Under the pieces are notes generated by a model that saw only the letters and a program-made list of their open reading frames with translations, searched no databases and was not told where the DNA came from. From Ramazzottius varieornatus (lineage: Eukaryota; Animalia; Tardigrada), in NCBI GenBank assembly GCA_001949185.1, contig BDGG01000003.1:4318411-4382410 (forward strand): a stretch of 64,000 bases of DNA, written 5' to 3'. Position 1 is the first letter of the stretch; each line of letters starts with the position of its first letter. Made by a program: the position numbers and the translations under genes. Of this stretch, positions 1,893-63,800 are shown piece by piece.

Positions 1893-4800
1893 TCAAAGGC
1901 GTTTGGAACTCAAAGATTTTGGAGGACCCTTTGACTGCGACTGTGCGTAGTCCTCCGACACAATATCTCCCAGTGGAGTCAACGGTATTGCCTCTCGTTT
2001 GTCCACCAGAAAACCGTTGGACGAATGACTCCTTTTGCGAGGCCGTTGTTTCGAAGACTCTGCGGAAGTTCGTCGTGATGCCGAGAACAGCACACTGATA
2101 TGACTGAGCAGCGACATCCGGTCAAAGTCGGTATGAAGACTGAGGTGCATCTTTCGCTGGGAGTGTCTCCTTTCAAGGTGCCCATTCCCCGGGTCCGTCG
2201 TTTCCCGCTCGCCTTTCCGCCTACCTGTGTGCGCCGGTCTGAAAAGCGGCGATGTGCGCCGACGAAACGAGTCCTTTAACGCTGTTCGATACGTACTCGA
2301 CATCAGAACGTAGACGTAAAAGTTCCCCGAGTAGTTCGCCAGAGCCAACGTTGTTGAAAGAGGTTCCCAGATATTCTGAGCTTCTATGATGTGGTAACAG
2401 TATGGCGCGTTGGAGAAATGGTCGAGAGTGTTCAGGATAACGTTTGGTCCTTGAGTGAGGAAGTACAGAAGGACGCAAGCCAGCAGCATCCGACAAGGTT
2501 TCTTCCGGATGGGCTTCACCGAAGACGGACTGCTAACTTCCGGTGTACCACTGGCTTTCTCCGCGGTTCTGCCGTGTTCTTTCCGCAGCGACCTACTGAT
2601 TTTTAATTGTGCTTTGAGGTACGTGAAGAGATAGGCGTTGGAGGCGAAGAGGATGATCGTGACAATTATCGGGAAAGCGATCTTTAGGACGAAAAGATCG
2701 ATAATAATTATGATGCATCATTATGATAGTGAAAATAAACCGCGGATGAAAGCCCTTAAAAATTGTAAGTGCGTCAGCCTGCAAAGATCGATGTGCTACT
2801 TACATTCAGCTTCTGTTGATGGCGAATCCAGGAAGCGATCCCTACACAAAGGAAGGGCGAATTGGACAATCACACGCTTTTAGCGCTCATTATTGGATGT
2901 CAAAGATGGAGTGAAAAATTGGTCAGTCTTCAGGCATCAACAGCTACAATATCGGATTGGCGAAATAAATAATAGGTTCTGGGAGAAAATGTTACGTACA
3001 TTCGGGCTGGACGTAGTTATCAACATGTTTGTCCCCCTCCCAGGAGTCGTAGTACCACACAAGTATTCCGCTATCCATGAGGGCCGACAGGAAGAAAAAA
3101 AGGGTAATCAGGAGAAGAGTGCTCTTCCAGTGCGCCCTCAACTGGTGCCGCCATGTCCGGAACCTGAAGGTTGCAAGTCTCTCCAGGGAGAACGCCATTA
3201 AAATCCTGTATACATTCAAAAGTCAAAATAGCGCGGTACTGCCAGAAACCGCAGTTTGTTGGATCTATTGAAAAAATGGGAGCACCCGAGGCCTATACAC
3301 ATGGGGCCTACACCCGGGGCCTACACCCGGGGCCTATATCACTGATTGTTTGATTGTGGCACATTGCTACGCTTGATTGGCCAGGAATTTTTGATTGAGG
3401 GTAGTGAAGTTTTTTATCCGCGCCACGCAGTGTTTACTGGCCTGTCACGTGACTGCGCGAAGCCATAGAGGTAGTACAGTAGTGGCCTAACGAAATCACG
3501 TAACAGAAGTCCAGTCCGACAACTAGTAAAAAAGGTATGGAAGGAAGAAAATTGGGGCCCAGTATTTTACTGCTTCGTAGGCTTCACGCATGACGTCATC
3601 CGACACGCGAAGCATCTCCACTGGGTTGAACTTGACGCCTACGATGACGCCTACAATAACGAATATGTGAGTTCTGTGATACCGCACAAGGAAGGTGGAA
3701 CTAAGCAATGTAAAATACCGCAGAGGTGGAAATAATTGAAAATTTATTTCTCTAAATCTAGTCATGTCATTTCGTGACAGCTGGTACACGCGGCTGGCCT
3801 AATTATTGGCCAGGACAAAATTTCTGGCCGGACGGGCTGGCGGCAGTTTAACGCAGGGATTGTTATGTCGTCGCAGAAACTAGCCCTGTGACGTCAGCAA
3901 GTAAAATTTCGCAGTACACTATGCGGAATACAGTCGTTCCGGATTTCGTTCCTTATTTCGTACTTCTTTTCTCATCTTGAGCAAGGTTAGCCTGGAATAT
4001 ACCGGAAGGTCTCAAGAGCAAGAGACAGCAAAAGTATACGGAGGATAGCCTGATGGCTTCAGTTGGTCCGTGCGGTCGCAGTTCAAGCCTTGATAAGGTG
4101 GTGGATTGCCTAAGTAAAGGCCGTCAGAGCTGCATTTGCCCAACACCATAACCAAGCATATAGAAGGAATCAGATCTACGATGAGAAGATTTCTGCAAAA
4201 CGTTTGGTTGTTCGTGACTTCGTGTAGGTAAAGCGGTATTGTGTGGTGAAAGCCAGTTCTCTTTCAGCCGCAAGCGAATACAGCTGGCGGAACCGCTGAT
4301 TCGGAAATCAGTGGCCAGAAATTTTGTCCAGGCCAATGATTAGGCCAGCCGCGTGTACCATTTGAAAGCCCTAGTTTTTCTCTACAACTCTTCGTCAACA
4401 CAAATGTGATTCGGAATTATGGCGGAAAATCCGTTTTCATTTGACAAGACCCATATATCATTCTTACACGTCGCTCATATGGCCAAACGTATAATGCAGC
4501 CAGGTAAACGCCCCGAAGGATCCCACCAACGAACTCTCCTTCGCCAGATCCAGCCCTAGGAGGTCCGGGTACCGATTCAAATAAAGCACGAGGACAGACC
4601 ACCTGGATAACCAGTAAGAATATTCATGAGAGATTCAAAAAGCAAGCTTTACGAATGGGACGCCGGCAAATGACTTGGACAGTGGCGCACACTCAGTCGA
4701 TAACGAGGAAAACGTGCGCCATGTTAGATCACGATCATGTTCAATTCAGATGCTGACGTCTCAAATCTTATTTATCTTCCTTGGTCTTTCCAAAAGGAAC

Positions 4801-12944: not shown

Positions 12945-13489
12945 AACTGCACACAGCCATGCACATGGATATCGTTAATCTTGAGTTACGGTTAGACTGG
13001 AAGGACGATGTTGCTACTGCATGCTCGACAACACACGATAAATTGACCGTACTAGCACGTGCTAAGTTAAAGAAGAATTACATATCGTACATACCAAACA
13101 AGCAGAACTTCTATAAATAGCTTCCTTAGCCACTCCAAAGCCACTCGTGACTCAGCAGTATGGAACCTTCAATGTCTTGAGGGCGCGAGGATACTAAAAT
13201 TTATCCATTTAATGGATTCTATCAATACAAGCATGATTTCACAACCTACACAGTTTGATACAGTAGAAACTTCCTCCATTTGTTAAAGATTTTCATCAGT
13301 AAAGACCTACTTGTAGTAGCATTACAGTACCGAAAAAAGTTTCAACAAGGAAGTCATCTAGATTCTTGAAGTCTTGATTCAACAGTAAGGTCGAGAACAA
13401 CGCTGCGCTAGGCCTCGGCTCTTTCAGCTGTCTCTACAGGTTAACCTTCTCACGTTGCGCCATTTTTGATTTTAATTATCATGAACTCA

Positions 13490-13766: not shown

Positions 13767-16700
13767 TCATGTCCGGCTAGGCGTCTGAAGCAGACCGGTC
13801 TTGCTTTGAGTAAGCGACGCCCTGCGAACCTTCTCAGCCATCAGTCTCTCAACCGCCCGATCTTCCGTTGCCGCTTCCTGTGCGGTCTGTGGCGCCTGAC
13901 CCACGCGTTTCTTTCTCTTCTTCCGACCATTCGCAAGGTCCTGCGGCGTCAACTTGGTGAAAGTGTCTGCAGGAGGTGGATACCCTCTCAGTATAATCGG
14001 CGCACCGTCCGGATACCTCATGGTATTCGGCGGAAACTCCATGTGTGTGATGTCCGCGATCTCCAGTTCGAGTTCCAAAAACTCGCTGACTTTGGTACAC
14101 GTCATGAGAATGGAGTAGGCTTTCTCTAATAACGCCGCTTTCTGATTGTCGAACCTCCTTCGAGCGATCTCTACTGGGTCGTCGGCCTTCGCAGCTAGTC
14201 GTCGCTCAGCTTCCAGTTCTTCGTCTGTCTTGACGTGTTCCGTTTCAACCTGCGCTTCTTCCCTCGGTTTCAGATCGTCCTCGGTCATATACGGAGTTCT
14301 TCTGCGTGGACGTGGTAGATATGGCGCTTCGTTGTCTACCTTCTTCCGTAAAACCTCGTACTTGAACCCACGATCAACAATCATTCGGCGAAGCTTTCGG
14401 GGAGGATGTGCTGGTTCGGGTGGTGGCACTTCTTCATCGTCATCTGGGTTCTCTTTTGAGCGAACACCGGCTCCGACCAGGGACTCGTGCCGCTCTCTTT
14501 CTGGCGCACCAGGCGCTCCGGCTTCTGTCGCATCGGCGACCTCCGGCTCACCCGGCGCACCTTCGACCGGGTCAGCGGGAATCGACTCTTTGGGAGGTAC
14601 TGATCCAGCGGACAGTCTGTCTTGCGAACCATTTTCCTCAACGTCCGAAGTCTGGAAATAACACAGACACTGCATGGAATCCGAGCAAGCGAAGTCGACA
14701 AGCTCGCTTTTTCAAGTGGCGCACGTTTCCAGCTCATAACACCGGAAAGGTGCGCCACATGGGGAAATATCGAACTTGATAGATCGTTTTTCCAACTGGC
14801 GCATACTCTCAGCTTTTGACACCAAAAACTGCGCGACACTGGGGGAAAACAATCTTCGGCTGGCTTAGTTTCTCCCAACTTCTAACGTATCGAACAACCT
14901 TCGAGGATGACAGTAAACGTTTACCTTTGGTTTTTTCTTCTCTGGTTGTTTCTTCTCTTTAGTCGGTGCGAACAGGCCCTGGTGCTTTGCTTCATGCACG
15001 GGTGCCACTTTTGTTGCTTCAGCTTTCCGCAAGTCTTCCTGGAGCTCTGCAGACTTTCTGCGGCGTTTGTCCCAGTCGGCGGTATCTTCGTGGGCAGTGG
15101 TCTCGAAGACTTCGAGCAGACAGGCAGGGACTGGCCGACTGCCCGGTGAATCCGGCAGTGGTAGTATAGCCGGATGTTCGCGGCGTTTAACGATGGCCTG
15201 CTTGATCAGTGCGCGGTTCTTGTCCCATTGGTCTTCATTGCTGTCTGGATCGTAGTAAAGGTTGTCGTTGGCCTCTTTTTCTTCTTTCTTGTCCACCAGC
15301 GATACTTCCGACGCTTTAGCAATCTTCTTCATCCTGTTTTCGTATTCTTCGGCTTGTGCGATAATTGCTTTGATGTGCTTCGGATGTCGGAAGGTATCTA
15401 GAAGAACAGAAACAATGCACAGAGTAAACGGAGAATATTTGAAGTTCAGCAAACCAAAACGAAAAGATCATTTTCTCTAGTGGCGCATGCTTCTGACTAA
15501 TTAGACTGATATCGTGCGCTACTTGGGAAATCGATCTTGCTTGTTTGCCTGATTTCCTTGTGACATCGTATGTTATGTTATGGTACCTCACATGACTCAA
15601 TGACAAATTTACAACAGTTTCTTACTTTCGGGTGGCGCATAGTCTTTGAGACTGCTCAGCACAGTTCTATCCAGCTTCTTCATGAACGCCAAGTCATCGC
15701 ATTTCTTCGTCCGAATAGCGGCAATAGCTCCATGTTCCGCTGACCGATACCCGCATATCTCTCTCCAAGGTCTCCTCCTCGCTATGATGTGATTACTTCT
15801 CGACAGTCTTCCTGGCTGACGAACCCAGCATATATCCATCGGTTTCTCCTGCAGCTTGCACAAGGTCTGCGACAAGGCCCACTTGTACCGCGAGTTCTTC
15901 AGGCCGCCTTCTTTCGCTGGCGGTATCACTGACGTAATCTTCTTTTCTCGCATCCATTTACCGTATTCCAGCAGCCAGTCTGTCAGCTCATCGTACCGCC
16001 TAATCTGTTTGTTCTTCATCAGCGAGCAGATCACTTCGAACTTGTCGATTCGACTGCGAAGGTACTTCAAAGCTCGGTCAATCTTTCCCGTGTTATTTTC
16101 ACGACCTTGACGCGGGAGGAAATGCTCCTACAAGATAGAGAAAATGTATTCCGCACCAAAAGACAACAAAGTCCAGCAATAACAACTGGTGTGTGGGCGG
16201 ATGAACTGAACTAGATCGTTTTCATAAGTGGCGCACACTTCTCGCCAAAAACAATGAGAATATGCGCCACTTGAAAAACATAGACGAATTCGATTTAATC
16301 TGCTTTCCCAGTGGCGCACGGCTTCCGGCCAATGACATCGGAATTGTGGGCCACCTGAGACAAGGATTTGGTTCAAGTATTTTGCGAGCTCCCAAGTTTT
16401 ACCTGTTTGATGAGATGCTTTTCGATCTGCATTTTATTATCCCAGTATATCCCCAAGACCTTATGCGCCGTCTTCAGTTGCATGATCGAAGTCTTTTTCA
16501 CCCTCCGCTGTACATAATCCGGTGGTTCAGGTTTAGTGACATGGAACATGTTGATCTCGTCCTGAACTCCAGTAAGATACGGTTCCAGCGGATACAGCTC
16601 GTCATAGTGCTTATACGTATCGTTAAAGATTTTCTGCGCACGTTCCTGGCCTTGCACCAACCGATAAAAGACGCGCATGTTCCCGCCGTAAAACATGGGC

Positions 16701-17293: not shown

Positions 17294-17668
17294 TTAATAC
17301 TGCAATTTCCAGAAATACCACAAAATAACCCTCAGCTCATTACAATTTTTATCTCATCGACTGTTTTAGTATCACATAAGGGATGAAACTAAACATCAGC
17401 CAGCTGCGAGAAAAACTCTAAATATTCGAAAAACAACAACAAAGGTAATTTGTTGCTACACAGAACGGAAAAAGGCGAAAGAAGGTCAATGAAAATTCCG
17501 AATGAAAACTAAACAGAAAGTTTGAAGGTTTTCCGAGTGGCGCACACCTTTGGCTGTTATCAACGGAAACGTGCGCCACTTGAAGTATCGAGCTGGTTCA
17601 GTTCATTCACCCACGTTCATTCTAGTCATCGGCAAGGAACTTATGTAACATATTTCGAGGGGGAAACT

Positions 17669-20654
17669 TTAAGAAGAGTTCGACCAATCGTCGCCACTGG
17701 CGCTTCGTCGTTTCGCGTAGATCCAGTCTCTTCTTTCGATGTCGACATACGCGAAGATGGCCAGCACCACGATCAACGCGAACGACCCGACAGCGAACGC
17801 CAGACCGGACCACCAGGTCGCCGTGTAGTGGAACAGTCCCACGAAGATGATTGAGCCGAGTAGCGGCGCGATGGACTGGATGACGGAAATCAAGGCCATG
17901 GCTCGCCCCAGCTCATTCTTACCCACGAGCTCACCAAGGACCGAGCGAACACACACCATACACAGGAGACGCATGTGGCCGAAGCCCGCACTGGCGTAGA
18001 TGTGCCAGCCTTCCGTCGCCACGGAGTAACCGATGTAACCGATAATAGCGGAAGTATAGGCTACCATCTAGAACAGAACAACGTCTGTCTACTTGAACAC
18101 TGTCATTGACTCTCTTCCAGTACACAAAGGGCATATGCTAAAACCTGGGCCTGGACTGGATCGCTAGATCCCTGGATCTGGATTCCGGACCTGGATTTTG
18201 TCTGGATTTGTACTCTGTATCCGGACTAGTTATCCGTAGGACGCCAAAAAGTAGCAGAGAAAACAGGTATCAGACCGTGGCGAATGAATTGAACATGGTC
18301 GTTTTCCTAAGTGGCGAACACGTTCGGCCGGCTACAACGGAAAGGTTTCGTTTCGAGAACCTGTTTAGTTTCGAGAACCGCTAGGAACTCGGCTGCCAGC
18401 AGTATAGGATGCACTGACAAGTGAGCGAAACTTGATTTGGTAACAGCACGTTATTCGCCGGACCAGACTCCATTTTTGTCATCAAGCTGCCTAAGGTCTG
18501 ATCTCCAGTAGAGTTTCCTGAATTGCCATCATTCACAGTACTACCATATGGCTCGTGCGGTATCCTTACAAGGCTGCAAAGAGATGTGGACGTCGGCAAG
18601 AGAATTGAACATTTTCGGTATCTGCACTGGCGCACTTTTCCGTTGTGTTCGGCCGAGCGTGTGCGCCACTTGGGAAAACGACCATGTTCAAGTCATTCGC
18701 CAAGGTCTGATATCTGTTTTCTCTGTTGCCTTTAGGCGTCCTACGGACAACTAGTCCGGAAATCCAGACAAAATCCAGGTCCAGAATCCAGATTCAGGGA
18801 TCCAGCGATCCAGTCCAGGCCTATGTTTTAGCATAGACCTACAGAAAGTGCTCTTACCGCAATCGAAGTTTCCGTCATTCTGAAACAGCGACGAAGGAAC
18901 GCAACTGTGAAGACGACCGAGACAGAGCCGACGAGACCCAGAAGGCCTTGGAAGAAACTATACTGTTGTAAGGTCCAGCGGAAGGGCTCAAATTCCAAGA
19001 AGAGCTGCGTCACAGCGGACTTTCCTGGAAGAAGGGAAAACTGCAAGTACATTTTGTTTCACTTCTGTTCAGATGTCTTAAGACGAAGACTAGCAGATAT
19101 TATTTCAATGGGGAGGTCGGCAAATGAATCGTACGAGATTGTTATATCAAGTGGCGCATCTGTCCATTATTATTAACTGAGATCGTGCGCCACATGAGAC
19201 GTCGATCTTGGACGTTTCGTTTGCCGGCCTCCCAGATACATTTTCGAGATACTAGGTGGACAACTATTTCGAGAAAGATGTTCGTACCGCTGTAAGCGAT
19301 GTTGGAAATGAACGAAGCTAGTAAAATCAAGCACACATGGAGTCTAGTTTCCCCGGTCCGTTCTTTATTCAGCAAGTCGAAGCTTTCCCGTAAATGTCGG
19401 AGAGAGAACAGGTCGCTGCAGCCGTCAGAGCCGTATTTTGGTGGAGGTCGTAAATCATGGATGGCCACGATACCATACAAAAAGCAAGCCAAATACAGGC
19501 CACCAGCTACCATGAACGGGTATAGTATCGCCTTCTCGAACAAGTAACCTCCAAGGAAGGAGCCACCGTTCATAGCGATGACCAACAGTCCTTCGATAAT
19601 GGCGTTGTTGATGGCACGGTTAGACGAGTCGGTGAAGTCCCCGATGTAGCTGAAGACGGCCATCATGATGATGAAACGACCTCCTAGGAGGGAGGACAGA
19701 ACAGGGGAAACGAGAAGGTAGGACGGAGGAACGGGACGGATTACACAAAAGGCCGCCCATGCTGCTGCGGCAGCCAGACCGAAGAACGGAACGAGAAGGA
19801 GCCGCTTTCGCCCAAAATGGTCGCTCCAAGAACCTAAACGATCACAGAAAAGGTGAAGGGCAAGTTCGACGTGGACGAACACGTACACAAACAAATTTAA
19901 CAAGATTGTTTTAGTAAGTGTCGCAAGTTTGTAGTGTTTTTGGCCGACGGTGCGCGCCGCTTTGGAAACTCCATAAGATCGTTTCCTCAAGTGGCGCACT
20001 TCTGCAGTGTTTCTGGCTAAAAGCGTGCGCCACGCATAAATCTTGTCAAGTTTATCTCAAAAATCTCAAAGAATTCTCACATGGAAATTATTTGAGGTGT
20101 TTTGCAACCAATATGTGTAGTTTCTTTATATAGTTTTAACGAGATGTAGGAAAATATGTGGTAGGAATTCGGAGTAAATTTATAAAAGGTCACGTACCTA
20201 AAAACAACGATAAGATAATGGCCGGTATGGATTCCAGCAGGACACTGTACAGCTGATAGGCCGACGTTGTCTTGCGAACTGCGTCCATCTCATTGTGGTT
20301 GTACTTGTTGACAAGATGAGCGCATACCTCCGACGAAAAGTTGTGGTGAAGTTCACAAACCTTCAACACAAGAAAACGTTACCACAACGTTCCCCAACCG
20401 GAAATCAGAAACCAACAAAATGTTCTGAATTGTGGTACCTTGTACTTTAAGAGTTCGACGTAAGATGGGCCATAAATTCCGAAAGCCAGGCCGAACATTA
20501 GGACGACAGGTGCGGCTCGAATAGCTCCATAGTACGGAGAAGTCTTCTCTGAAACTCCGCTCAAGCTTCTGACCAAAGGACTGTTCTCATCGGAGCTGGT
20601 GTAAGGGCTCCGGGTCTTGGTAACCTTCGTACTCCGATATACTTCCGTCGGCAT
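17669..20654 (-). CDS. MFS transporter, SLC46 (proton-coupled folate transporter-like) family
   Basis: MFS motif A GSWSDHFGRKRLL, MAVFSYIGD, LFSLRHLRESF, RSVLGELVGKNELGRAMALISVIQSIAPLLGS; multiple hydrophobic helices over about 5 exons. Confidence 0.88.
18134..18835. mobile_element. Foldback/MITE element (~700 bp) with ~200-bp inverted arms in an SLC46 intron; each arm contains a palindrome-family unit
   Basis: Ends TATGCTAAAAC...GTTTTAGCATA. Arms 18134-~18344 and ~18635-18835 are reverse complements and include GGATCTGGA/TCCAGATTC sub-repeats. Confidence 0.85.
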
Positions 20655-27011: not shown

Positions 27012-27881
27012 TTCCGGTTCCAGGAGCGGAGGCTTGGTCGCAATCTACAACAAGAAAAAGTTTTTGCTAGTATTTCACCAGTAAAGGTTTAGCGTTTCTG
27101 CTTGGGGAAATTCGACTGACCACTTTCAGTGACTTGCCGCTTCAAGTGACTGATCAACAGTAACAGCTGGTTCTGCTTCTGTGGAAAGTCTTCTCAGCTT
27201 CTGCTTCATTCGTTCGGCTCACAGATATGACCGTATGTACAGCCGGTTCTGCAAATCGCGTTTCTCGATACAGCGAGCACGTTAGAAGGTCAGTGACTGG
27301 ATAGAATGACTGCGTTCTCGACTCGATTGTTACGCAAGGCTAATCGAGCTCCTTCACCTGCACACCATAAAGACTTCTCAAATTAGTGTCTTGAATGTTT
27401 ACGCACTGAAAAATGAGTCCGCCGCAGCGTCAAAAACTCAGCATGACGGGTCTTCAGAATATCTGCGCAGGAAACCGCGAGTGAAATGGCTGAAACAACA
27501 TTCAGGACGCCGGCAATGACTTGGACAAGATCGTTTTCCAAAGTGGCGCACACCGCCTGCTGATAAAAATAATGCCGTGGTTGCGAATGTGGAACCTAGG
27601 CAATCAAATTTGAAGTGGCGCACGTTTTCAACCCGTGCGCCACTTGAGATAACGATCATCTGCGGTTCTTCTTGACGGCCTCCCATTTCGACTCGATGAA
27701 GACACAGTTTTCGAGATCTTAAGAAACGTTAATTTACAAGTAACATGGGAAAACAGCTAGTCAGTTGTACATGAAGGCGAGATCAATGAAATCAACATTC
27801 GGTTTTCATGAAAGCTGAAGGATAAAAACAAGCAAAAGGTTTAATCTGGAGGACGCAAAACGAAAATGCATACCGAAGTGA

Positions 27882-33200: not shown

Positions 33201-34240
33201 CAACACTGCCTGAAACTATGGAACATGATAGCGTCGGTGTTGTCGAAAGCAGATCCTCTCCCGCCATCGAAGAAACCCGGAAGCTCGACCTCCATCTTCT
33301 CCGTGGATGGGAAAGCCTTCTGGTCTGTCATGAGGCTGATTCAACATCGGAACGTGCTTTACTTGGTTCTGAGCTGTGTATGTCGCATGTGGTCTCTGAC
33401 CAACAAAGGCCCGACCACGTTGGCGATGTCGGCAGATCCGCTCTGGCCGAGCACACTTCCTTTGCAGTCACCAGTTAGCGCGGGTGATATAAAAGAGGCT
33501 GTCGAATCTGTGATGGAGATTTCGTATGCAGCTGGCGTAGACGATCCGGAAGCTTCCGTTGTGAAAGGTAAAAGACACACCACACTCTGAAAACTTGAAA
33601 TTGCAAGCTGAATTGGAGCTCAGCTTCCTTTGTTATTGACTGGAAGCGTGCGTCACTTGGAAAAGCGATCTTGCCGAGTTTGTTTGCCGGGCTTTCAAAT
33701 GGTAGAAATGTTAGGCGTGAGGATTCGAAAGTTTTCGAAAAGTTTTCGGTGTGTTTAGGTAACTTCTACTTCGCCAGTGGAAGGTACGAAGAAGCCATGA
33801 AGATGTTTCTCCTCAGTGTCGTGCCCGACAGTCTTCCGGGTTTCATCCATCCTCCCACGGGTCCTTCGCTGAGCCAAGCAGTACTCAGAAAGATGGCAAG
33901 TACGTTGGAAGCCATGAAGTGCTTCACCTATCTGGCTGTTCTGTGCCAGATGATGCAACCTGTAGATTATGAAACGGCATTCCGAGCTGTCAGCGAGAAG
34001 GTGACATACGATTCTGCGGATGCTGCCTATCAGTTCATCTGGGATCCCTTGATCCTCGAACACACAGCCTATGTTATGCAGAAAGCGGGGTTTTTGGAGA
34101 AGCGACAGGTCGTGTTGGATGTGTTACAAGATCCTTTACTGACGGGAGCGAACCCACCTGCAGTTGGCGAAAGAATAGCGGCCGAACGATCTGCAGAGTT
34201 CTTTGAAGTTTTGTTCACTCAATATGTACTGGGAAACTGA
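30247..34240 (+). CDS. INTS8: Integrator complex subunit 8
   Basis: LMLASAIKWDLEKLE, VYARWILRAHIQ, LCDVAGYFLFEGK, and C-terminal CFTYLAVLCQMMQPVDYETAFRAV...YQFIWDPLILEH match conserved INTS8 blocks. Confidence 0.88.
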
Positions 34241-40010: not shown

Positions 40011-41484
<1,474 letters not shown>

Positions 41485-46564: not shown

Positions 46565-48579
46565 CTAGGACGAGGAGAGTGGTAGCCACTGTAGTCTGTC
46601 ACGACGGACTTCAGACGGGTTGAACCGCCACATGTTGAGGCATAGCTGCTCAGGCTTCTTCCACAGCTTCCTATAGTCAGGCTGTGCTTCGAAACTCCAG
46701 TGTGGACAGAATCTCTTCCACAAATAGCCACGACTTCCCGGTGGACTAACTTCCATGACGTCGATCACAGCCGGCATAAACAGGTAAACCTTCAAAACAG
46801 CGGTAGAATAACCCTACTGTCATGTAATGTAACGTCATATATTACCTATGTATGACATGTCTGTGTAATTACCGTTCTTTCACGCGTTTTCCGTTCAAGG
46901 AGCTCTGCCACGTGTTCGTGCTTGACATGGTCGCTCATTCCAATGTTGACGAACCGCTCGCTCTCGTGTCTTGGCAGGAGAAGGGGAAATTGTGGAACGA
47001 TGTACGTCTGGTAGTAAGCCACATGCACTTCCGGTTGGGTCGTCAGCGTACGCTGGGCTGTTGAAAGACTGGGAATCACGCCGCCTTGGTGGACAAAACC
47101 AAAGAAGAAACCAGCTATGAGGTTAAACGCTATCCAGATTGCTTTCAACGGTGAACAGTTCCACACGATGTCCGCCAGGAGAATGAACATCGGGATCATT
47201 AAAGGCAGGAGGAAACGAGGCTCCTGATGTGGTATCATCGAGATCAGGAATAAAGGAACTAATATGATTAAAAAGAAAATGTAAGACTTTTCTTCGCGTA
47301 GCTTCTGCCGTAGAGAGGGAAAAAGAAGCGCGAAGAGCATGGGACCGAAGAGCTGTGGCATGCTGACGGTGAGATGGAAGTATCTTGGATGCAGACCGTG
47401 CACTTCGTTGTTCTTCGGGTTGATGTTGTACAGGAAGAATTGGTAGGGAGTGACGACAAATCTACCGAAGTAGAGACTGTCCACGGCGATGAACACAGCG
47501 CATGTTAAAAGTCCGGCAGTAACGCCACGAACTACATTTTTCACCTGAAAAACAACATTCGGAAGGATTACAAAGAGCGGAAATAAGATGAGGCGTGGTC
47601 ACACAATGTCGAAAAGTTTTCCTTATGGCGCACTCTTCCAGTTTACAACACCGTAGACGTACGCCACTTGGGAAAACTATCAAACTGGACGAGATTGTTG
47701 CCCCAAGTGGCGCACGTCTCCGGGCATATTGACCAACCGCTTGCGCCACTTACGACAGCAATCTTGCCGATTTTGTTTGGCGAGCTCACGAAAAGAGACT
47801 TTCTGAGCCACTACAACCTCAGGTACGCTACAAATAATTTCAGTGGTTTCATGGTAGTTGAATTCACGAAAAAAGTTACTTGGTAGCGAGCGAGAACGAG
47901 AAGCCACGGAATGGTTCCGAAAGCCAAGAATGTCGGTCGGTTGAATATTCCCGCAGCGCTGACAATGCCAATCCACTTCGCCGCAGACCTCTGCGACATT
48001 TGGCCATAGAGCGTAGACCTGCATACCAAGTACAGGAGCCAGGCAAACAGGAAAGTCTCGACCGAGTTACTAAACGTTCTCGACAAGAAGATGAATTCCA
48101 GGTAAGACGTCCGGAAGCACAAATCCAGCGCCCGGCTTCTTTGTCGACTTTTGGCCTTCACGCTTATCTCAGGTAAAAACCACCACAGTAGAACCCGCAG
48201 GAAGAAGAGGATGATTCTTGAAATAACAAGCATGAAGTACGAAGGGACAGAGACGCGCAGGTAACGAGAAACGAGAAGCGTGAAGTCAAATGGAATGCCC
48301 GTCGTCAGGTAAGGGATAGTAATGGTCCGCAGGGAGTTGACTGGATCGAACTCCCATGCTCGGTAATGTGTCACGTTGAAGATATCGCCTGTGCAACAAC
48401 GTTCCATCAGTAATACCCATGTGCAGGAGGCAAAGGATTTACGTACCGGCCATAATCTCGGGGTTTTGAAAGAATTCATCCGGATGGATGTAGCCAGTCT
48501 GGAACAGCGCGGCGATCTCCAGAGTTATCCAGAAGCAGCCTTGAAGGAACAGATTGCGCGTAATGGGTATGTTCACCAT
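46565..48579 (-). CDS. PIGZ: GPI mannosyltransferase 4 (PIG-Z/Smp3)
   Basis: [73 protein letters not shown]. Confidence 0.92.
47590..47786. repeat. Tandem pair of palindromic elements (82-bp offset) in a PIGZ intron
   Basis: Cores at 47625 and 47707, both with 27-bp spacers; the right end reads ...atcttgccgattttgtttggcgagct. Confidence 0.9.
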
Positions 48580-49288: not shown

Positions 49289-50989
49289 ATGAATTTTCTA
49301 CCAGTCATCATTCTATTAGTATCGTTTCTGTGTGGAACTTTGCAGCTGGACAACTTATCAAACACAGGTAAGCGTAGTACTACTTGTACCGGTGTTGGAA
49401 CACCAACGACGAACCCACATAGGACGTAGGAAAATGATTCCATCCAGATCGTTATCTCAAGTGGCGCATGTTTACGTGCTGCTGGCCGAGGGTATGCGCC
49501 AGTTGAGAAAACGATCTGACCGAAATCATTCGCCGACGTCCGATATAATATTATCATTGTACTTGCTTATAATTATAGCATCCATTTTTCAGTCGTGCTG
49601 GATGATATGTGCAGAAGCGCCAACCGCACCATCGTACTTCCTTGTCAAGCATCTTCGAACAGAAGATCCGGTTCCTTGATCTTCGACGAATATCCCTTGT
49701 CTGACTGTGATATCCTGGTCAAGGTGGTTCCTACCATGGAAAAGTGCAAAGCGGAAATCGATGACGGGGTTCAGTACGGAATTCACTTCAATATCCGGTA
49801 CAAGTTATCAGAAGACTTAGAAACAAGCAACCTTCATGATGTGAAGCTCGTGCAACCTAATTTGTCACTCTCCTTGTTATAATTAGGGACTTGTCGCTGC
49901 AGTACGACGACCTCTTTGAGGTCTTCGAATTCCCCAGAACCAACGTCGAGGATATCAGCTCTCTGCAAAGATTCAAAGTCAAGTCCCTCAGCGGACTGGA
50001 CGACATTAGCGCCTGCCGGACGGAACCATCCTCTTGTGCCCAACTGATATCCGCCTATGGATCCAGTCCGACACTGATACTCCATTTCCAGCGTGGAATC
50101 TTTCAAGCGAGGAACCCGGCTAGACCGTTTCGGATAGACTACACAGTTCTCACTCGTACGTGTCAACCTTTCACATTTGGGACGTCGGCAAATGACCTGA
50201 ACACACTCGTTATCCCAAGTTGCGCACGCTTCCATCATTAATGGCTGAAATTATGCGCCACTTGGAAAGACGAGCATGTTCAGATCATCTGTTGACGTTC
50301 TGCTTAATTCATGTCCGTTCTCTCATTTCTGGCGTTCACGCATCGGTGCTTTCACAGGATATCGTTCAGGTGGACATGGTGAAGTTTTCTGCAGTGCGCT
50401 ACAAGGTTACTTAAGGACAGATTTGATGTGCAGTAGAGAAGACCGGATATATTGTCCTTCCTCCTATGAGAAGGCTCTTGGGCTAAATCCCGCCGAGAAG
50501 AAGAATCAAGGGTTTCCGGCTCATGACCAATGCAGGAGCCGTAAGAATATCACTCTAACATTCACGAAGTCGAAGTTGTACAGCAAGTCGGTTGTTGTAG
50601 GGATACTGACGGCGGAAATTATTCTGGTTGGGTTTGCTTCCCTGCTTACCCTCACATTTGTCCTCTTCTGTGTCCTGTTCTGCTGCAAACGTTGGAATGC
50701 CCGACATGAGAAGATGGACGTTCGTTCTTTACCATCATACAGAACAGCGACGCGACCGTCACGGTTGGCCACCATATCAGAGGAAGTGCAGGGCCGTGGT
50801 GAGGACGGACAGTTGGACCACGCCTTCGATGACAACCTTCCGCATTACGAAGAACTCTTCCCACCTGTTAGAGCCACTGATGGTCGACGTCCCATCACGA
50901 GCATCGAGAATGAGGGTTCCATCTGCATGGAGTCATCGACCGCTTCAGCAAGAAACCAAGTCCGACATATGAGTTCCTATGGGATATAG
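49289..50989 (+). CDS. Type I membrane protein (signal peptide, Cys-containing CUB-like ectodomain, TM helix, cytoplasmic PY-like motifs)
   Basis: Signal peptide MNFLPVIILLVSFLCG; TM VVVGILTAEIILVGFASLLTLTFVLFCVLFCC; tail motifs LPSY and LPHYEELFPP. The domain identity is tentative. Confidence 0.65.
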
Positions 50990-51349: not shown

Positions 51350-53233
51350 TTATCCGTACTTCGTCAGTTCTGGCCACTGGTCCACCGTAAGTTTCGTGCC
51401 TTGGCCATCGAAAACCCTACGAGATACCGCATGAAATGAGAACTCGGAAAACAAACTCGAAAAGCTTATTTTCACAAGTGGCGCATATCTTCAATGTTGT
51501 TGGTTGAGAGTGTGCGCCACTTGTAAAATGATCTTGTCGAGCACGTTTGCCTAGGTCCGAGAAAATAGAGAGAGAGATACTGTAAAAGGAATTTTACAAC
51601 AGAAAACAATTTGCGTACCTTTCAAGCCATGTGGACAGTCCGTCTAACGAGACCTCGCTATTCCGCGAATCCGCTGAAGTCTGCAGAAAGCCCACGTTCT
51701 GACTTTGACGACGTTTCCGGTTGGTGAGATTCTGACTTTCCACGTCCGAATCGCCGCTGTCCGAGCTGTCAGAGAACCCATAGTAGTTCTCTTTCTTATT
51801 CAACCTCCTTGTCGCTTTTGAGTGAAACAGGAAGAAGCATCTTTTGAAGTTGTTCAGGACCAAAACTGTACCCAGGCACGGCTTCTTCTTAATGTCGACC
51901 GAAGGCCCAACCAGACCGGCTTCTCGAAGAAGGTGTAGATACCAGTGAAAGTATTTGTCGAGATCCACATAGGCAAACGCCAACGTTCGCGAGCTGGAAA
52001 AGCAAAATACAAAGTAGCCAACTGAATTCTCTCAAGTTTCGTTGTTCATTGTGAATTTGAAATTGTTAGCTCGGTAAACAAGCTAGACTAGATTGCTTTC
52101 CCAAGTGGCGCACTTCTCCAGTAGTTTAGACTGAAAGCGTGCGCCACTTACAAATCCGACCAGATCGTTTTCCCAAGTGGCGCACGTTTTCAGTGTTATT
52201 GTCTGTACGCATGTGCTACTTAAGAGAACGATATCGTTGACCTTATTCGCCTGCTTCCAATTTACATACTTTCTGTAAGGGTGAATAGTGTCGGCAAACT
52301 GGTCCACTAATCCCTTTGAGCTTCCGTCCACCAGCAGCAGCACCGTTCTACACCCCGGTTTCTGCAGCTTCAACAGACCATAGTAAGTCTGCAGTGACAT
52401 TTCGTGGATTAGCTTATCTGTCGGTAGGGTCCTGTGGCTGGGGGAAAACGCTGCCTGTGAAGAACGCGGATCTTTCTTGCCCTCATCCGCATCGAAGAAT
52501 CGGACGAGTGCTCCGACACCCGTGATGGCCCCTACTGTCAGTAACGTCAACACCCAGGACGTTAGTCCATCGAACGACAAGACTTTGTTCCATATGCGTC
52601 GGCTCAGGGGCTCCTGTGGTTCTCTCCGCCTCGCCCGGAAAAAGTCTTGGCTGAAGTGTGCGAAGGGATCGCCTTGGAATTGGTAACGGCTGCCGTCGGA
52701 GGACTGGTAGAAGTAGACGGTTTCACCGTCACTCGAGAAAGGATGTCGTTGCTGTTGTCGCTGTGAGGTGTTTTCTCCATACTGATCGTAGTTCTTCCTT
52801 CGCTTCGGATCAGACAGTATCTGCGAAGGAAAGAATTAATACACAAAATGGGAATTCGGTACGTGAGCCATTCTTCGACCAAGATAAGTACTTGGTAAGC
52901 ATCAGCTATCTCCACGAAGCGGGCCTGAGCTTCTTTCTTTGTGCTCCGATCCGGATGCCTGAAAAGAAACGTTCGATGTGATGATACGGAACACAAACGA
53001 GCGATTATATACGGTAAGTATTATTGATGAAAATCCATTGAAGACTCATAAAGTAATCATTTGTGTCGGAAGTCGCACCATTCTCGCGCGAGCTTCTTGT
53101 AAGCTCGCTTGATCTCTCGCTGATCCGCATTCCGAGATAGTCCGAGTACTTCGTAAGGACTTCGGGCGGCTACGAGTGCGAACAAAGCAATGTGCAGAAA
53201 AACAACCAGCAGTGTTCCAGTCAGCAGACGCAT
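51350..53233 (-). CDS. DnaJ protein, DNAJC16-like (signal peptide, J domain, TM, cytosolic C-terminal domain)
   Basis: SPYEVLGLSRNADQREIKRAYKKLAREW/HPD...FVEIADAYQ/ILSDPKRRKNYDQYG. The C-terminal blocks EMSLQTYYGLLKLQKPGCRTVLLLVD, GTVLVLN and LDGLSTWLER/VFDG...WPEL are typical of DNAJC16. Confidence 0.8.
52068..52256. repeat. Tandem pair of palindromic elements (72-bp offset) in a DnaJ intron
   Basis: agctcggtaaacaagctagactagattgctttcccaagtggcgca-N27-tgcgccac... followed by a second core at 52177. Confidence 0.9.
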
Positions 53234-57107: not shown

Positions 57108-59053
57108 ATGGAAGAAGCAGAGACTGGATCGAGCAGTCCGGCCGCCGAGGAACAACCCACATCTTCCCACAATGGATCACTAGGCATACCGCAAAAGTCC
57201 TGTAGAATCTGCGGAGACACGGCGCTCAACATGAACTTCGGAGCTGTGTCGTGCGAGTCTTGTAAGGCGTTCTTTCGCAGGAACGCAGTGAAAGCTAAGG
57301 TACTATCTCACCCATCCCGTAACATTTCGACGGTAACGATGGTTTTGGCCGTTGGAAAACCAACATCCGATCTCGCCCCGATGTCAACGGATTTCGGGAC
57401 GGGGCAAATGGCTTGAATCAGATTGTTATCTCGAATGGCGCATATTTTCATTCTATAAGCTAAAAGTGTGCGCCACTTGGGAATGGGGTTGATTCATCTA
57501 GTGTACTATTTTGCAGCAGCTTTTGTGTCCCTTCGAGAATGCCTGCAACATCGACATTGAGTCCCGCCGTTGGTGTCAACACTGCCGGATGAAGAAGTGC
57601 ATCGACATGGGTATGAAGAAGGAGCTAATCCAGAAAGGCAAGAGGCCCATCGGCGACTGCGACGCGGACATGTCCTCCGTCAACGGCGAACCTTCCTCAC
57701 CGCCCCCTGAAACCTCCTCTGCACCTTCTTCTCAGTCGTCCGTATCTCCAAGGCCCCCTTCGAAAAAGATCAAGATCAAGACGGAATCTTCGTCCATCAC
57801 TTCAAGGACAACCACAGCGGTGGTCCCTGCTGAGACGCTACAAGTGATGCTGGGCAGCACTTCAGGGCTGTCAGTATCCTCACCTTCCCCTTCTGCTGAA
57901 TCCTTTTCTTCCGTCAATTCCAATGGCGACGCTGCGCTTCTCGATGGCTGTGACTTGGAAGTTCTGTGTTCTTTCGAGAAGGAGAAAGTCGTCGAGCTCA
58001 TTCGTGCGAACGAAGTACATTGTAGAATTACAGTCCTCGTGAACGGTCGTTAGAAGTCGGTTTTCAGGTGTTATTTTTTCGTAGGAAATGATTGAATCGA
58101 ATCCTTCAGAAGACACCGTTGCAGGTATGTCCAAGCGTATTTGGGACGTGAGCAAATGAACTGTTCCAGATCCTTTTCAAAGTGGCGCGTATTGTAGTTT
58201 TTATTGGCTGGAAGCCTGCGCGACTTGGACAAACGATCTGGCTCAGCTCGTTTACCCACGTTCCATTTCTTTTCTCCGTGAAAGGTTTTGGTGCTGTAAT
58301 GTTCCGTTTTACAGTGCGGCGTCAGGAGAACGTTCGGCTCGTTGATGTTATCAACAGTAAGCTATGCTCCGACCTTCAGATTAATCTGTCAGTCCGATCT
58401 GTGACCGAATCAACCGTTACAGACTTAACTTGCCACTCATTTTTCCTCATTTTCCAGTGACGGATATCGCCATAAGGCGACTCATTAAAATGTGCAAGCG
58501 TATTTCCGGCTTCAAGAGTCTCATCCAAGAGGATCAGATCTCCCTCCTCAAAGGCGCCTGCTTCGAGATGATGATTCTCCGGGCAGTCACCCACTACAAC
58601 CTCGAGAAGGACTGCTGGCGAGGTCCACTCGAAACCATGATCAAGGTAGACGTCCTCAAAGAAGCACGAGGTAACTGTTACGAAGAAATTAAGGCTTTCA
58701 TACACTCCTTCGCTCCCGAGTTGCGCAAAGACGAACGGTTGCTTCTCATACTCGGCGCCATCACACTGTTCCACCCTGGTAGACCGACGCTAGAAATGCG
58801 TGGTCAGGTTGCGGCACAGCAATCGCTGTATTACTTCATTCTTCATAGTTATATTAGAGCCAAGTATGGCAAAGGGGGACTTGGGACGACAGAGCAGTTG
58901 TACATGCAGATGACGGCGAAGGTGGACTTGCTGCACTTGTTGAATGATAGACATATCAGCATGTTCATGGAAGTCAACCCGAAGGATGTAGAGCCGTTGC
59001 TGATCGAGATATTCGACCTGAAAATGGCCGTGGCGAATACGCAGAAACTGTAA
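57108..59053 (+). CDS. HR96: Nuclear hormone receptor HR96 / NR1J family
   Basis: C4 zinc fingers CRICGD..NFGAVSCESCKAFFRRNA (P-box ESCKA, typical of NR1J). LBD DIAIRRLIKMCKRISGFKSLIQEDQISLLKG; AF-2 PLLIEIFDL. Confidence 0.9.
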
Positions 59054-60759
59054 AACGTTCCTGATTTCTATACTCTTACCAACCGTTGTTCTCAAATTAA
59101 CACTTTCCAAACCAGTGATTCTTCTTTGTATGACAAAAGACTTGTTCTGACTAGCTGAAATTTCCTGACGTTATGAGAGAGCATTCGCTCGATTTTTGCT
59201 GATAGCAGGATTTTCATGGTTCTGGTTTGTTTTTCCGCTGTTTTCACCAGCACAATGTTCAGAGAACCTCTTATCATAAAAAAGTTTCGGATATGGTCCA
59301 CTACTGCTTTAGTGATGACGTGGGAAATGGTTCGACGAGGACACTTCGTGGTGTGTCAGTCTTGGGAAAGGGACCCAGTGGGTTCTTGCAGGCTGTAAGC
59401 AGTGTATTGGTCGTTCACAACTCTGTACCGCATCATAGTCCTGGAAGAGATCTTGCATGGTTAGCAGGAACGATTTAATAAATCATATTGGAGATAAACG
59501 TACAAAATCATTCTGTCAAGTGGCGCACTTTTCCATTGTTGTTGGGGTAAGTATGCGCCACATTCTCTAGCGACTTGTACGTTTAATTTGCCGGCCTTTC
59601 AGGTAGGGTTACACGATAGGGTTCGACAGCAAAAACGAATAATTCTTACCGCCTGTATTTTTCTCGAGCCTCTAAGGCGGCTTTCTGCTTCCGGACGACG
59701 CAACAAATGATACAAATTCCAGTTATGCAAAACAGAGCCACAGCCGAAGTGCATCCTATTATGACCGCAACTTCACCGGAAATGAAAGAGTTGTCCATCC
59801 CTTAGTTTCGGAGTTAACTCGATAAGGCATTTCACGCAGCATCTGGCCATAAATCACGGCGTGGATCCAGGCGTTCTAAATTTTCAAGCCTGAAATAACA
59901 AAGAGCGAACTTCCGGCCAGCGCGAAAACTATCCGCGAAGTTCTGTACCGCTCGACGAACGGTTCAAGAACCCGAAGCACCTCACTCGAGATTGAACGAC
60001 TCAATCGGCCGTAAGGAATGACATCAGAAAGTCCTATTGGACAGTCTAGACACTTTTGGAAGTGTAAGTGAAAACATACCATTGTGGTCGGAAATTTCGC
60101 TGACGAGCTCGCAGTATGAAGCCATACAGACCTTCTGTGACTGTCAGCCGAACAAGTGATCGTAACCCGGCCAATTTTCTAAGACGTAAGCAAACGTCTG
60201 CCGTAAGTAGGCGGTAAATTAAGAACCACTGCCGAGACTTTGTTTGTTTGTCAGTAGTTCGTCAGGGATTAGATCGATACAAGAGACTCCATTATGTCTG
60301 AAGCCTTCCTTGTTTTTCGCGATTCAGCAGGTGCGGTAACGGTTCTACTGCGCGAAGTGATGACGCAGAATACTCGGAGGTTAAGTGTTAATAATGGTCG
60401 CGCAGTAAAACTTTGTCCGTGTTTTGATATGATGATGATTACACTTTCTCATGGTACCGGTATCATCAAGCGCTTCCTGCTCCGTAACCGGCGTAACGAT
60501 AGCGTGACAGGCCGAAACTGTCTGCACCTGACATAGGTCCTGTGTCACTCCCGCCGTCGCTCGGGAATAACTCGGTCTCATCAGATGATACTCTAAACCT
60601 CAAATTCTTATTTGTCGAATTTGATTAGGCTATCGGAATGAATCCTCTGGGGTCACAGTCATATTGATTGCCAACATCCAGACGGACACTCTGCCCTGAC
60701 GGACCGACACGGTACACACTGTATGCAACAAGGAAATCCTCGATCTTTTCATCCACCTT

Positions 60760-60895: not shown

Positions 60896-63800
60896 CAGTT
60901 TGTTTGAATGATCGTCCCGAATTGGGCTGTCACATGTTTCAGTTTTCAGCGGGAGCGTCAGTCGCAAGAAGAAGTGAGTGGCCAGAGTCGTCGCAGGGAT
61001 CAGACTGGTGGGATCAATCGGGGCGAGATCTGGGAGAAGTTCTAATCCTGTTAATACAGCACAAGTTAATCCCTTGATAGAAAGTGTCGTAACAAATAAA
61101 CTTTACTTAAAGCAAACAAGTACTCTGTCGCTATATTGAATAGCCTCCATAGAAAGGCGAAGAGCCTAAATCAATAACCATCAAGTCTATCGCACACTAT
61201 CAAACTTGCAGTCACCATATGTGGCGGGAAGTAGTCATCAAAACACTACCCCATGTTTTCCATCCCATACATGCCACACTTCCTCATACATTTTTAATTT
61301 AGTAGCTCGACGGAACAGAACCAACCAAGCCCGTCGTCAATTTTCGTCGCTTCGGGAAACATTGCCGTACCTAAATATCAAAATACACCACTTTTGAAAT
61401 TCGACGTGAAATTTACGAGCGAAATCACCAGAAAAATTGCGACGTCGGCACATTCACTGAACGTGGTCTTTTTATCAAGTGGCGCATACTTTCGGCCAAT
61501 AATAATGCAAAAGTGCGAAACTTCAGACAACCATCATGCTCAATTCGTTGCCAATTAATTTTTATACGTCCAGTTAATTTCGAAAGGCCAAGAATAAGCT
61601 CGAAACTCGAGCTTATTCGTGGATTCATTCGAGAGAGTTTCGGAAATGGATCAAGGAACATACGGCGAATGTCAATACAGGGGAATCGTGCACGCAAAGC
61701 TGCTCGCGACCGTAGCCGTAAAACCAGCATCCGGCTGGATTCCCGGCGTATTTGGTCTGTGATACTTGGATGTCCCGGTGGTATAAGTACAGGTGTAACG
61801 CGATCGCTTTCCTGGTCGTTTATTACCGAATTGCCCCATTTTACACAGCAATTTCATGGATATGGGATACATGGTTCCTTTATGGACGTGTTGTCTCGAA
61901 TCACGATGCCACGCCCTTTGGAAGGATTCCTTGAGCAAGCCTTACCGAAGGTTTCTCTACCGCAGCCGTATATTGTGGATACGGAAAAAGAATATTTCTA
62001 AATATGTTGTGGTATTTTTCATTTCGTTAATTAATTAATTTAACTGCATTTGAGCAAAGGACATAACGGTGGTTACGCACAGCGCAACGCGCCCAAATGA
62101 AATAATTTATACGGCATGACATATGGGCGGCACGCGCGTACGGTACCAGATTGACATGTCCGAGGAGCGGAATCGGTTAGAGACAGGAAGCTGCAAGGAT
62201 ATACTTAACGTCCTTAACGTCCATGATCCCGGTAATATCTTTTGCCCCCATTTCCCTACGATCTAGCTGGGCACGGCATATCCATGCGGGTCCGTATCGA
62301 TATCAGTTGTCAAATTTCACTTTGACACTGCGGTACCGAATTTAGTACCATTCGTTCATCCTGGAAAGATCGTTCTTTTTATTCGAATTAAATACAATAC
62401 CTGACGTATTGCAACCCACGGTGGCAGGGAAATCATTATTGTAATGTGACAAGTCCACGAAACGAAACAGCTGGACATCCAGAGCCTACCTTCTGGCCAT
62501 CGATTGAAGCTTGGTTTGTGGCAACATCATCAGTTCGATTCTGTCGTCCGAGTCCATCTGAAACCAGAGCAGAATACAGGTGAGTCCGCGAGATCAATTT
62601 TGGTTTGTAGAATTTCAGCAGTACATAGGGATGACAACGAGGAGGCGACGACATAGATGTGTATGGTGTGTGCTGATGGTGACCTTGTCATAAAGAGCCG
62701 AGCATTCTGACTGTGAAAACTGATTGTCGAGCTGACGAGCTTCCTCATCTTCAAGGAAGACGTTTCTTATCGTAACTGACAGCACCTGGAGTCAGTTCCA
62801 TATCAAAAAGCTGGGCGGGCACCGTCAATCATTGCTCCTGTTACGTATCCCTTCATTACGGCGAAAAGGTTGTCATGAATTTATAATGGCCCAGTATCAC
62901 GTCATCCCCCTTACTGCAACAAAGACCACAGACGAGACTGGATACTGGTCAACAAATAGTCGTGCGAAAGACAGAAGTATTCCTGGCGAAATCAAAGGGA
63001 GTGAATTTTAGGCTTTTAGCTAGAGAATACTTATTTAAGAAGATTGAAAGCCTTCTTGAAAATGCGATTTCTTATTGACAGAACTTTCATCGACAGTGAT
63101 ATTAGGTAGTTCGCGATCATCAGAGACTCATGGAAAGTCCATGTGACCTTTGAAAGTCTGATGGATGAAGTCCCACATATCAATATTCGGTGTGCATCAA
63201 CACCATGTTACAGGAAGCTTTAGAATGCTCATTGCGTTTTGATCCACCAAGCAGGAAGTCATTTCGATGTATAATTATGACCTACTGTCGTGCTTTTGCT
63301 GTCAAATTAGATGGACGCGGCGCTTTGGAATAAAGTGGATACGAGAAAGAGGAGACGGATGAGGAAAGCTATGGGTCCCTGTTCCGTGATACACCGCAAT
63401 GATGGGATCATTGCCGTGTATCGGGAAAATAAACCCACCTCCCACCGCTCGCAGTTTGCTCTGCATCCCCACTATACGGGACGTCAGCAAAGGATTGCAC
63501 ACAGATCGAATACCCAAAGTGGCGCATGTTCGAATTACTAATGGCTGAGACGGTGCGCCACTTGGAAAGACAAACCGGGTGAATTCGTAACTCGTTTGCC
63601 TACGTCCCATTAGTACTATCAATCTCATTGTAGCGCTTCATTGTGTAAACAAGCTGTAGCGTTAAATGAGCAATAAATCTGAATAGCTCACAAACAATGG
63701 CTTAATTAAGTGTCAGAAATTGGATCTTTGTCCGACATGTACTGTTTCAATGCAAATGCCGGTTTCACAGATCGGCCCCGTGTTTATTATCGTTCGGGAT

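Follow-up and report, generated by a model that had tools for sequence, protein, structure and literature searches.

Slow decay of a paired core word and of its spacing in an abundant palindromic transposon family of the tardigrade Ramazzottius varieornatus

Background

A 64,000-nucleotide stretch of the Ramazzottius varieornatus genome (contig 3, positions 4,318,411-4,382,410, in an assembly of 55.8 Mb and 200 contigs; the whole of this stretch is hereafter called the window) is densely populated by short palindromes in which two inverted copies of one core word stand at a nearly constant distance, and it raises the question of whether these palindromes are decaying remains of a mobile element or whether a part of each copy is still under selection. 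The original prediction, made from the letters of the window, did not recognise the palindromes as a described repeat family and proposed that they are a selected bipartite cis-element, probably derived from a transposon.

Here, we describe the family in the window and genome-wide. The palindromes are copies of an already catalogued miniature inverted-repeat transposable element (MITE, a non-autonomous class II element) that is ancient and now immobile, and the core word in each arm, together with the distance between the two words, has decayed more slowly than the remainder of the element. The account that we favour, tentatively and at somewhat less than even probability, is a burst of a Sola1-type MITE followed by weak purifying selection after insertion, which in essentially all copies would act on the AGTGGCGCA pair and its spacing. 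As a mobile element the MITE is ordinary; the slower decay of its core and spacing and its residence in introns, like the family as such, go without discussion in the text of the paper that presents the repeat library (PMC11071193).

Abundance and anatomy of the family

In the window, exact pairs of the form GTGGCGCA-N(20-34)-TGCGCCAC were found 12 times, compared with 0 in 100 shuffles, and when one mismatch per octamer was permitted there were 31 pairs, 23 of them with a 27-bp gap. An nhmmer profile seeded from the window core pairs and iterated until convergence yielded 41 units, of which 38 were two-armed and 3 one-armed by core pairing. The spacers of the 38 two-armed units measured 27 bp in 29 cases, 26 bp in four, 28 bp in two, and 29, 25 and 13 bp in one case each. 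These numbers match exactly the hand counts given in the original prediction (41 units, 38 two-armed, 29 with a 27-bp spacer).

Sequence beyond the window was sampled as twenty evenly spaced 10-kb segments of contigs 1-3 (200 kb) and five 3-kb loci, and genome-wide statistics are pattern counts and rows read by eye. The twenty segments held 53 units, or 1 per 3.8 kb, compared with 1 per 1.6 kb in the window, which is thus about 2.4 times denser. Genome-wide, the exact pair AAGTGGCGCA-N27-TGCGCCACTT occurs 1,109 times versus 0 for a reversed control, and the exact 10-mer AAGTGGCGCA occurs 9,740 times versus 114 for its control. From the 10-mer count and the sample density, the genome contains roughly 13,000-14,500 units, about 2-3% of its length.

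The unit is a near-complete palindrome of 123-125 bp, with 56-bp inverted arms and without coding capacity, flanked by a 4-bp target duplication; the family of palindromes first noticed in the window is real, and the length of about 117 bp first assigned to it was slightly short. From the outside in, each unit comprises a terminus (GGGAGCTC or GGGACGTC), the 6-mer GGCAAA, a 24-bp arm segment, AAGTGGCGCA and the 27-bp spacer, followed by the mirror image, and at least two arm types, beginning with GGGAGCTC or GGGACGTC, share one common core. The spacer consensus consists of a 9-bp stem and a 9-nt loop. The loop consensus contains CCAATAAC, including a CCAAT box, which is present in both orientations (for example, at window positions 14733-14741). 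CCAATAAC has a likeness to the site of a known insulator protein, but within the unit conservation is lowest in the loop (identity 0.35-0.55).

About 40% of the units belong to tandem dimers or trimers with periods mostly of 80-84 bp and a minor group of 65-76 bp. Each tandem array is bounded by a single pair of termini, and the linker between its units is a small hairpin of two inner arm segments. Such arrays were seen at window positions 14685-14859, 16197-16385, 19888-20056, 47601-47779 and 52074-52250, and at positions 3308-3610 of sample L009; their shared junction suggests that multi-unit versions amplified as units.

Slower decay of the core

The core is seen to decay more slowly even when detection bias is removed. 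A hidden Markov model (HMM) restricted to 38 columns of the outer arm, with the core excluded, produced 92 matches, 90 of which had an adjacent core at three or fewer mismatches, and in the best 38 of the 92 matches the core 10-mer diverged from the consensus by 8.7%. In an unbiased set of 49 genome-wide copies, chosen only by the pattern GGCAAA-N95-TTTGCC and tallied by eye, the core 10-mers differed at 91/980 sites (9.3%) and the 8-mer GTGGCGCA at 60/784 sites (7.7%). When one core is exact, the partner 10-mer is exact in 29% of cases and the adjacent-arm GGCAAA in only 17%, rates that translate to approximately 0.09 changes per site for the core versus 0.20-0.22 for GGCAAA. Divergence per site is about 0.17-0.23 in the arms and about 0.29 in the inner stem. 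The original prediction had named uniform divergence, once detection bias was removed, as the result that would count against it; the divergence is instead position-specific, at about 8-9% in the core versus about 20-29% elsewhere.

The boundaries of the slowly decaying segment are sharp. Column identity drops from 0.92-0.99 in the core to 0.5-0.7 within one or two bases, and among 36 monomers the left-right mismatch is lowest for the core 8-mer (0.13), compared with 0.30 for the proximal arm, 0.39 for the distal arm and 0.47 for the inner stem. The number of core mismatches in a copy follows a single binomial (9% per site), with an observed share of zero-mismatch cores of 0.14 (0.14 expected) and approximately binomial variance; a mixture in which some copies are kept perfectly and others abandoned is thereby ruled out. 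An apparent second conserved block at GGCAAA (85-90% in the HMM alignment) was rejected as an alignment artefact, given the divergence obtained for this 6-mer by counting.

Base composition was ruled out as the cause. Consensus columns with G or C have an identity of 0.92 in the core and of 0.62 in the arms, where A/T columns reach 0.75; because G/C columns decay fastest outside the core, composition works against the observed pattern. The ratio of observed to expected CpG is 1.01 in the genome sample, so that retention of the core CpG, from which the original prediction had argued, is not remarkable in itself and the argument is moot. A likeness of the core to the CTCF motif had also been raised: in a comparison by eye with the motif of about 15 bp, 8/9 positions agree in the 3' half, whereas there is no fit in the 5' half. 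The likeness appears confined to one half of the motif and gives the CTCF argument no clear support. For a control transposon family of similar age, no other abundant repeat was present in 280 kb after the MITE was masked.

Stability of the spacing

Where both cores are exact, the gap between them is exactly 27 bp in 1,109/1,398 pairs (79%), and where GGCAAA and the core are exact, the 24-bp interval between them is retained in 937/1,676 arms (56%). Expressed per base pair, length change amounts to 0.0086 in the spacer versus 0.024 in the arm, a 2.8-fold lower rate, which bears out the fixed geometry claimed from the window. The spacer carries more substitutions than any other part of the unit (column identity 0.35-0.8) and is yet stable in length, so its length rather than its sequence appears to be held.

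Family identity and target site

A curated R. varieornatus library (PMC11071193; Peona et al. 2024, Mob DNA, supplementary file 3) includes the entries ramVar1-0, -6, -7 and -23, and ramVar1-7 is described there as a DNA/Sola element of 123 bp with a 4-bp target site duplication (TSD) and 56-bp terminal inverted repeats. In the portion of the file considered here, these four entries (lengths 113-125 bp) match the window consensus in termini, core and 27-bp spacer, ramVar1-6 carries GGGACGT-type arms, and the core string occurs 57-58 times. The family is thus a described one, contrary to what was first supposed. The Hypsibius (H. exemplaris) entries that precede the Ramazzottius block in the same portion of the PMC11071193 file include none with the core word, and a search of the full-text literature for the core strings returned only unrelated primers and constructs.

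Terminal inverted repeats, a target duplication, a small non-coding unit and a high copy number mark the family as a MITE. The position four bases outside the terminus is A in 32/42 arms and the adjacent position is T in 32/42 arms; the two positions between them are mostly A or T, and the bias ends sharply, with none from the fifth position outward. Perfect 4-bp direct repeats (ATTT, AATT, ACAT, AAGT) surround many copies, flanking GGGA...TCCC. A 4-bp duplication with the preference A-W-W-T, as found here, is called a hallmark of Sola1 in PMC3845634 (citing Bao et al. 2009), and we assign the family to the Sola1 type from this target signature and the library label.

Timing of the decay

Whether the arms are a valid neutral benchmark for the core depends on when they decayed. 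Target duplications are identical at insertion and therefore record only the time since insertion. Among 47 copies unselected for duplications, the duplications are identical at 109/188 positions (58%), the two middle positions match in 54/94 cases versus about 31% by chance, and the duplication is perfect in 8/47; the 13 copies with the best-defined ends give 34/52 (65%). The left and right core 8-mers of these 47 copies are about 85% identical. These values mean that the duplications have decayed by about 0.2 changes per site, even with one third of the ends misplaced, which is similar to the decay of the arms and 2.5-3 times that of the core.

The library consensus sequences, in the portion considered, are perfect or near-perfect palindromes, so the left-right mismatches of the arms arose after each master copy. 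Moreover, because arms and duplications are equally decayed, the copies were presumably near-identical when inserted. Only 2 exact 29-mer arms exist genome-wide, so there are essentially no young copies in the family. The palindromic consensus sequences, the decayed duplications and the single binomial of core mismatches argue that most of the decay came after insertion.

Several points weigh against this timing and against the selective reading built on it. The duplication tally was made by eye from 49 listed copies and depends on the correct placement of element ends, and a mixture of 30% intact duplications and 70% unrelated flanks fits it no worse than uniform decay. In five copies selected for their perfect ends, the duplications are perfect (5/5) and the middle sites all match (10/10), and the three of them without arm indels nonetheless show about 30% arm mismatch, which leaves some room for divergence before insertion. 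A scripted local duplication test on 23 elements gave 48% identity versus 40% in shuffled pairs, a noisy result in which many ends were uncertain or were dimer linkers. Calibration of the target preference on young copies was impossible with only the two exact 29-mer arms available. Neither a candidate for the binding protein nor a gene for a Sola1 transposase came to light, and no search for an autonomous partner was made.

Weighing the explanations

The perfect-end copies with their perfect duplications and mismatched arms, and the fit of the mixture model, would suit an ordinary decaying MITE whose core was retained only along the transposing lineages, as a transposase-binding site, so that neutral benchmarks overstate the decay after insertion; the presence of at least two arm types and of many library subfamilies with a common core points the same way. 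Such a history is, in our judgement, unlikely. The near-perfect palindromic consensus of the subfamilies places the left-right mismatch after the master copy, the duplications of unselected copies are as decayed as the arms (58-65% identical), the core mismatches follow a single binomial, and almost no young copies are present. The lower rate of length change in the spacer would also be left unexplained.

Constraint could instead act on RNA, with the G+C-rich core pair clamping a hairpin in the pre-mRNA that would make the intron effectively shorter, attract an RNA-binding protein or supply a double-stranded RNA pathway. The units are indeed largely intronic where transcripts were aligned (10/11 in window 14001-20000) and fill much of their introns, a palindrome presents the same words in either orientation to transcription, and contigs of high depth carry core-bearing copies. 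However, the 9-bp inner stem beside the loop is mismatched at 0.47 and the arms at 30-39%, so the helix as a whole is not maintained, and 0/60 changes in the 8-mer are compensated on the partner arm; it is the sequence that is conserved and not just the pairing. A hairpin clamp also has no obvious need of a fixed loop length, and we consider constraint at the RNA level quite improbable. The uniformity of the slowdown across copies, with neither fully intact nor fully decayed cores in excess and with near-binomial variance, could stem from a non-selective process, such as a low local mutation rate or short-tract homogenisation at the core, for example through repair started by a nuclease or transposase to which the word is still recognisable. 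Eukaryotic MITEs are not known to have any such mechanism. Outside the core, decay at G/C positions is faster rather than slower, homogenisation tracts would need to end abruptly on either side of a 9-10-bp word, and the stability of the spacer length would again be unaccounted for; this explanation seems to us very improbable.

Selection on the paired site is the reading that we retain, on the evidence of one genome and partly of hand tallies. Compared with sites of equal age taken as neutral, the core decays more slowly, and the spacing between half-sites appears to be constrained. In the proposed scenario, the family would have amplified in an old burst, with copies near-identical at insertion; thereafter the copies would have been immobile, their arms, spacer sequence and target duplications decaying neutrally, whereas the 9-10-bp word AGTGGCGCA in each arm and the distance between the two words would have been under weak, uniform constraint. 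The sharp edges of the core and the fixed gap resemble the trace that a sequence-specific protein would leave on paired half-sites. More speculatively, AGTGGCGCA might originally have been the subterminal binding site of the Sola1 transposase, and a DNA-binding protein, whether derived from the transposase or a factor of the host, might still bind both inverted half-sites at their fixed distance; the putative reader may have descended from the very transposase that formerly acted at the site. The outcome would be a lattice of about 25,000 half-sites across the genome. As to the selected bipartite element of transposon origin envisaged in the original prediction, the slower decay of the core and the stable spacing fit it, and the points on an undescribed repeat family, on CpG and on CTCF found no support.

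A bolder extension, which we regard as doubtful, is that the approximately 13,000 Sola1-type palindromes were co-opted together, their approximately 25,000 half-sites at 27 bp being read by a transposase-derived or insulator-like protein, and that they form a mostly intronic lattice that would shape chromatin or co-transcriptional processing as a eukaryotic counterpart of the bacterial REP/RAYT system. Should the constraint be real, a transposon family with a motif pair retained in essentially every copy would make up about 2-3% of a compact animal genome and would rank among the largest collections of selected, transposon-derived sites in any animal, and the 9-10-bp word with its spacing would provide a bait for a DNA-binding protein in a model organism of extreme stress tolerance. 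The target duplications, for their part, offer a simple internal clock by which decay that preceded insertion can be told apart from later decay, and which could be applied to other MITE families.

Comparison with known systems

Bacterial REP/BIME palindromes, which are about 35 bp long, are intergenic and depend on RAYT transposases of another class. They are similar to the tardigrade family in being numerous short palindromes kept in sequence, and they are read by a domesticated transposase together with host DNA-binding proteins. The resemblance is an analogy only, for how a transposase-derived reader could maintain a family. In the P element, the transposase binds a 10-bp word located about 40-50 bp inside each end, and insertion generates 8-bp duplications. 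The placement of a subterminal word internal to the cleavage terminus is common to the P element and the tardigrade family; membership in the P elements is ruled out by the length of the duplication, which is 8 bp in P elements and 4 bp, of the form A-W-W-T, here.

Protein-binding sites carried by transposons are known from mammals, in which short interspersed nuclear elements (SINEs) have spread CTCF sites. MITE-borne E2F sites have been described in plants (PMC5950925). In these cases, and as proposed for the tardigrade family, a small transposon has brought a short protein-binding word to thousands of places, with at least part of the copies retained. The tardigrade sites differ in being inverted pairs at a 27-bp gap and in showing the slowdown in nearly all copies rather than in a subset.

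The insect Sola1_NA MITEs of Bombyx and Rhodnius (PMC3845634) share the 4-bp A-W-W-T duplication with the tardigrade family and, by eye from Table 1 of that paper, have termini GG(G)AC, as here, and AAGTGG within the inverted repeat. This AAGTGG likeness is a by-eye lead that the core may have begun as a transposase-binding site. The insect elements differ in being 250-700 bp long, in having tens to hundreds of copies and in not being palindromes over their whole length, and no protected motif pair is reported for them (PMC3845634).

Units in the window

The units of the window are listed below; coordinates are those of the nhmmer matches, the strand is given as "." for all, and the spacers (in bp) were obtained by core pairing.

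4666..4752 (.), unit 1: spacer 25; nhmmer, 38 bits
8499..8593 (.), unit 2: spacer 29; nhmmer, 62 bits
9087..9186 (.), unit 3: spacer 27; nhmmer, 73 bits
10934..11036 (.), unit 4: spacer 27; TSD AATT/CATT
14685..14859 (.), units 5-6, tandem dimer: spacers 27, 26; within intron 14652-14924
15449..15548 (.), unit 7: spacer 27; within intron 15398-15625
16197..16385 (.), units 8-9, tandem dimer: spacers 27, 28; within intron 16127-16401, terminus 9 nt from splice donor
17527..17608 (.), unit 10: spacer 27; in last exon or 3' untranslated region of minus-strand MFS gene
18280..18345 (.), unit 11, one-armed: within intron 18068-18857
18596..18700 (.), unit 12: spacer 27; within intron 18068-18857
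19120..19224 (.), unit 13: spacer 27; within intron 19024-19286
19888..20056 (.), units 14-15, tandem dimer: spacers 27, 27; past exon end at 19838
24801..24906 (.), unit 16: spacer 27; nhmmer
25474..25576 (.), unit 17: spacer 27; nhmmer
26609..26706 (.), unit 18: spacer 27; nhmmer
27515..27573 (.), unit 19, one-armed: nhmmer, core pairing
27609..27668 (.), unit 20: spacer 13 (internal deletion)
31260..31302 (.), unit 21, one-armed fragment: nhmmer
31310..31399 (.), unit 22: spacer 27; nhmmer
32854..32957 (.), unit 23: spacer 27; nhmmer
33624..33687 (.), unit 24: spacer 28; left core decayed
37213..37314 (.), unit 25: spacer 27; top score, 77 bits
39709..39808 (.), unit 26: spacer 27; GGGACGTC-type arms
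40546..40634 (.), unit 27: spacer 27; nhmmer
42832..42928 (.), unit 28: spacer 27; nhmmer
43952..44042 (.), unit 29: spacer 27; nhmmer
47601..47779 (.), units 30-31, tandem dimer: spacers 27, 27; period 82
49432..49533 (.), unit 32: spacer 26; TSD ACAT/ATAT
50188..50291 (.), unit 33: spacer 27; GGGACGTC-type arms
51448..51550 (.), unit 34: spacer 27; nhmmer
52074..52250 (.), units 35-36, tandem dimer: spacers 27, 27
57404..57484 (.), unit 37: spacer 26; nhmmer
58152..58255 (.), unit 38: spacer 27; perfect TSD ATTT
59496..59591 (.), unit 39: spacer 26; nhmmer
61448..61549 (.), unit 40: spacer 27; nhmmer
63487..63588 (.), unit 41: spacer 27; nhmmer

Outside the window, some individual copies stand out. 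Four near-identical copies (C3:207505-207611, in sample L015; C3:1258565; C7:2115323; C13:1106431) share a core that is already mutated (GTGTCGCGCA) and have the appearance of an old MITE copy that travelled within a larger and younger repeat or segmental duplication; sets of this type could give a clock that is independent of transposition. The well-preserved unit at C3:1532035-1532167 has perfect GGGAGCTC ends and a target-duplication match of zero (GCTC versus TAGT), and its left flank repeats part of the terminus, which suggests insertion beside the end of another copy or recombination between copies.

Introns, transcripts and neighbouring genes

Contigs of four RNA-like runs were aligned to window 14001-20000 and delineated five minus-strand introns with GT..AG ends (14652-14924, 15398-15625, 16127-16401, 18068-18857 and 19024-19286). 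Eight units lie within these introns, where they take up much of the short ones; two lie past the exon end at 19838, and one (17527-17608) is in the last exon of an MFS-transporter gene; 10 of these 11 units were counted as intronic, in introns of 228-790 nt. The introns of 228-275 nt are largely MITE sequence, and the terminus of one dimer is 9 nt from the minus-strand donor (16385-16402). Genome-wide, the units are mostly in short introns. The orientation of the loop is mixed within genes of one strand, which gives no indication that the strand matters to any role.

Numerous transcriptome contigs that derive from other places match only 18-21 nt around the cores (14725-14803, 18661-18683) and then diverge, some of them at a depth of 480-717, so that core-bearing copies are present within some abundant transcripts. 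In window 14001-20000, contigs of two 2022 studies that bear the same organism label differ from the reference by about 1-1.5% in exons, with, for example, 10 differences in 17336-18067, whereas the runs of 2016-2017 are identical to the reference; there seems to be a second strain or a cryptic species among the public data.

Two plus-strand open reading frames of the window, 38491-39525 and 44417-45139, located 6 kb apart, contain the WSD (Williams-Beuren DDT) motif with E-values of 6e-15 and 9e-18, and are probably tandem paralogues of the gene for a chromatin-remodeller subunit.

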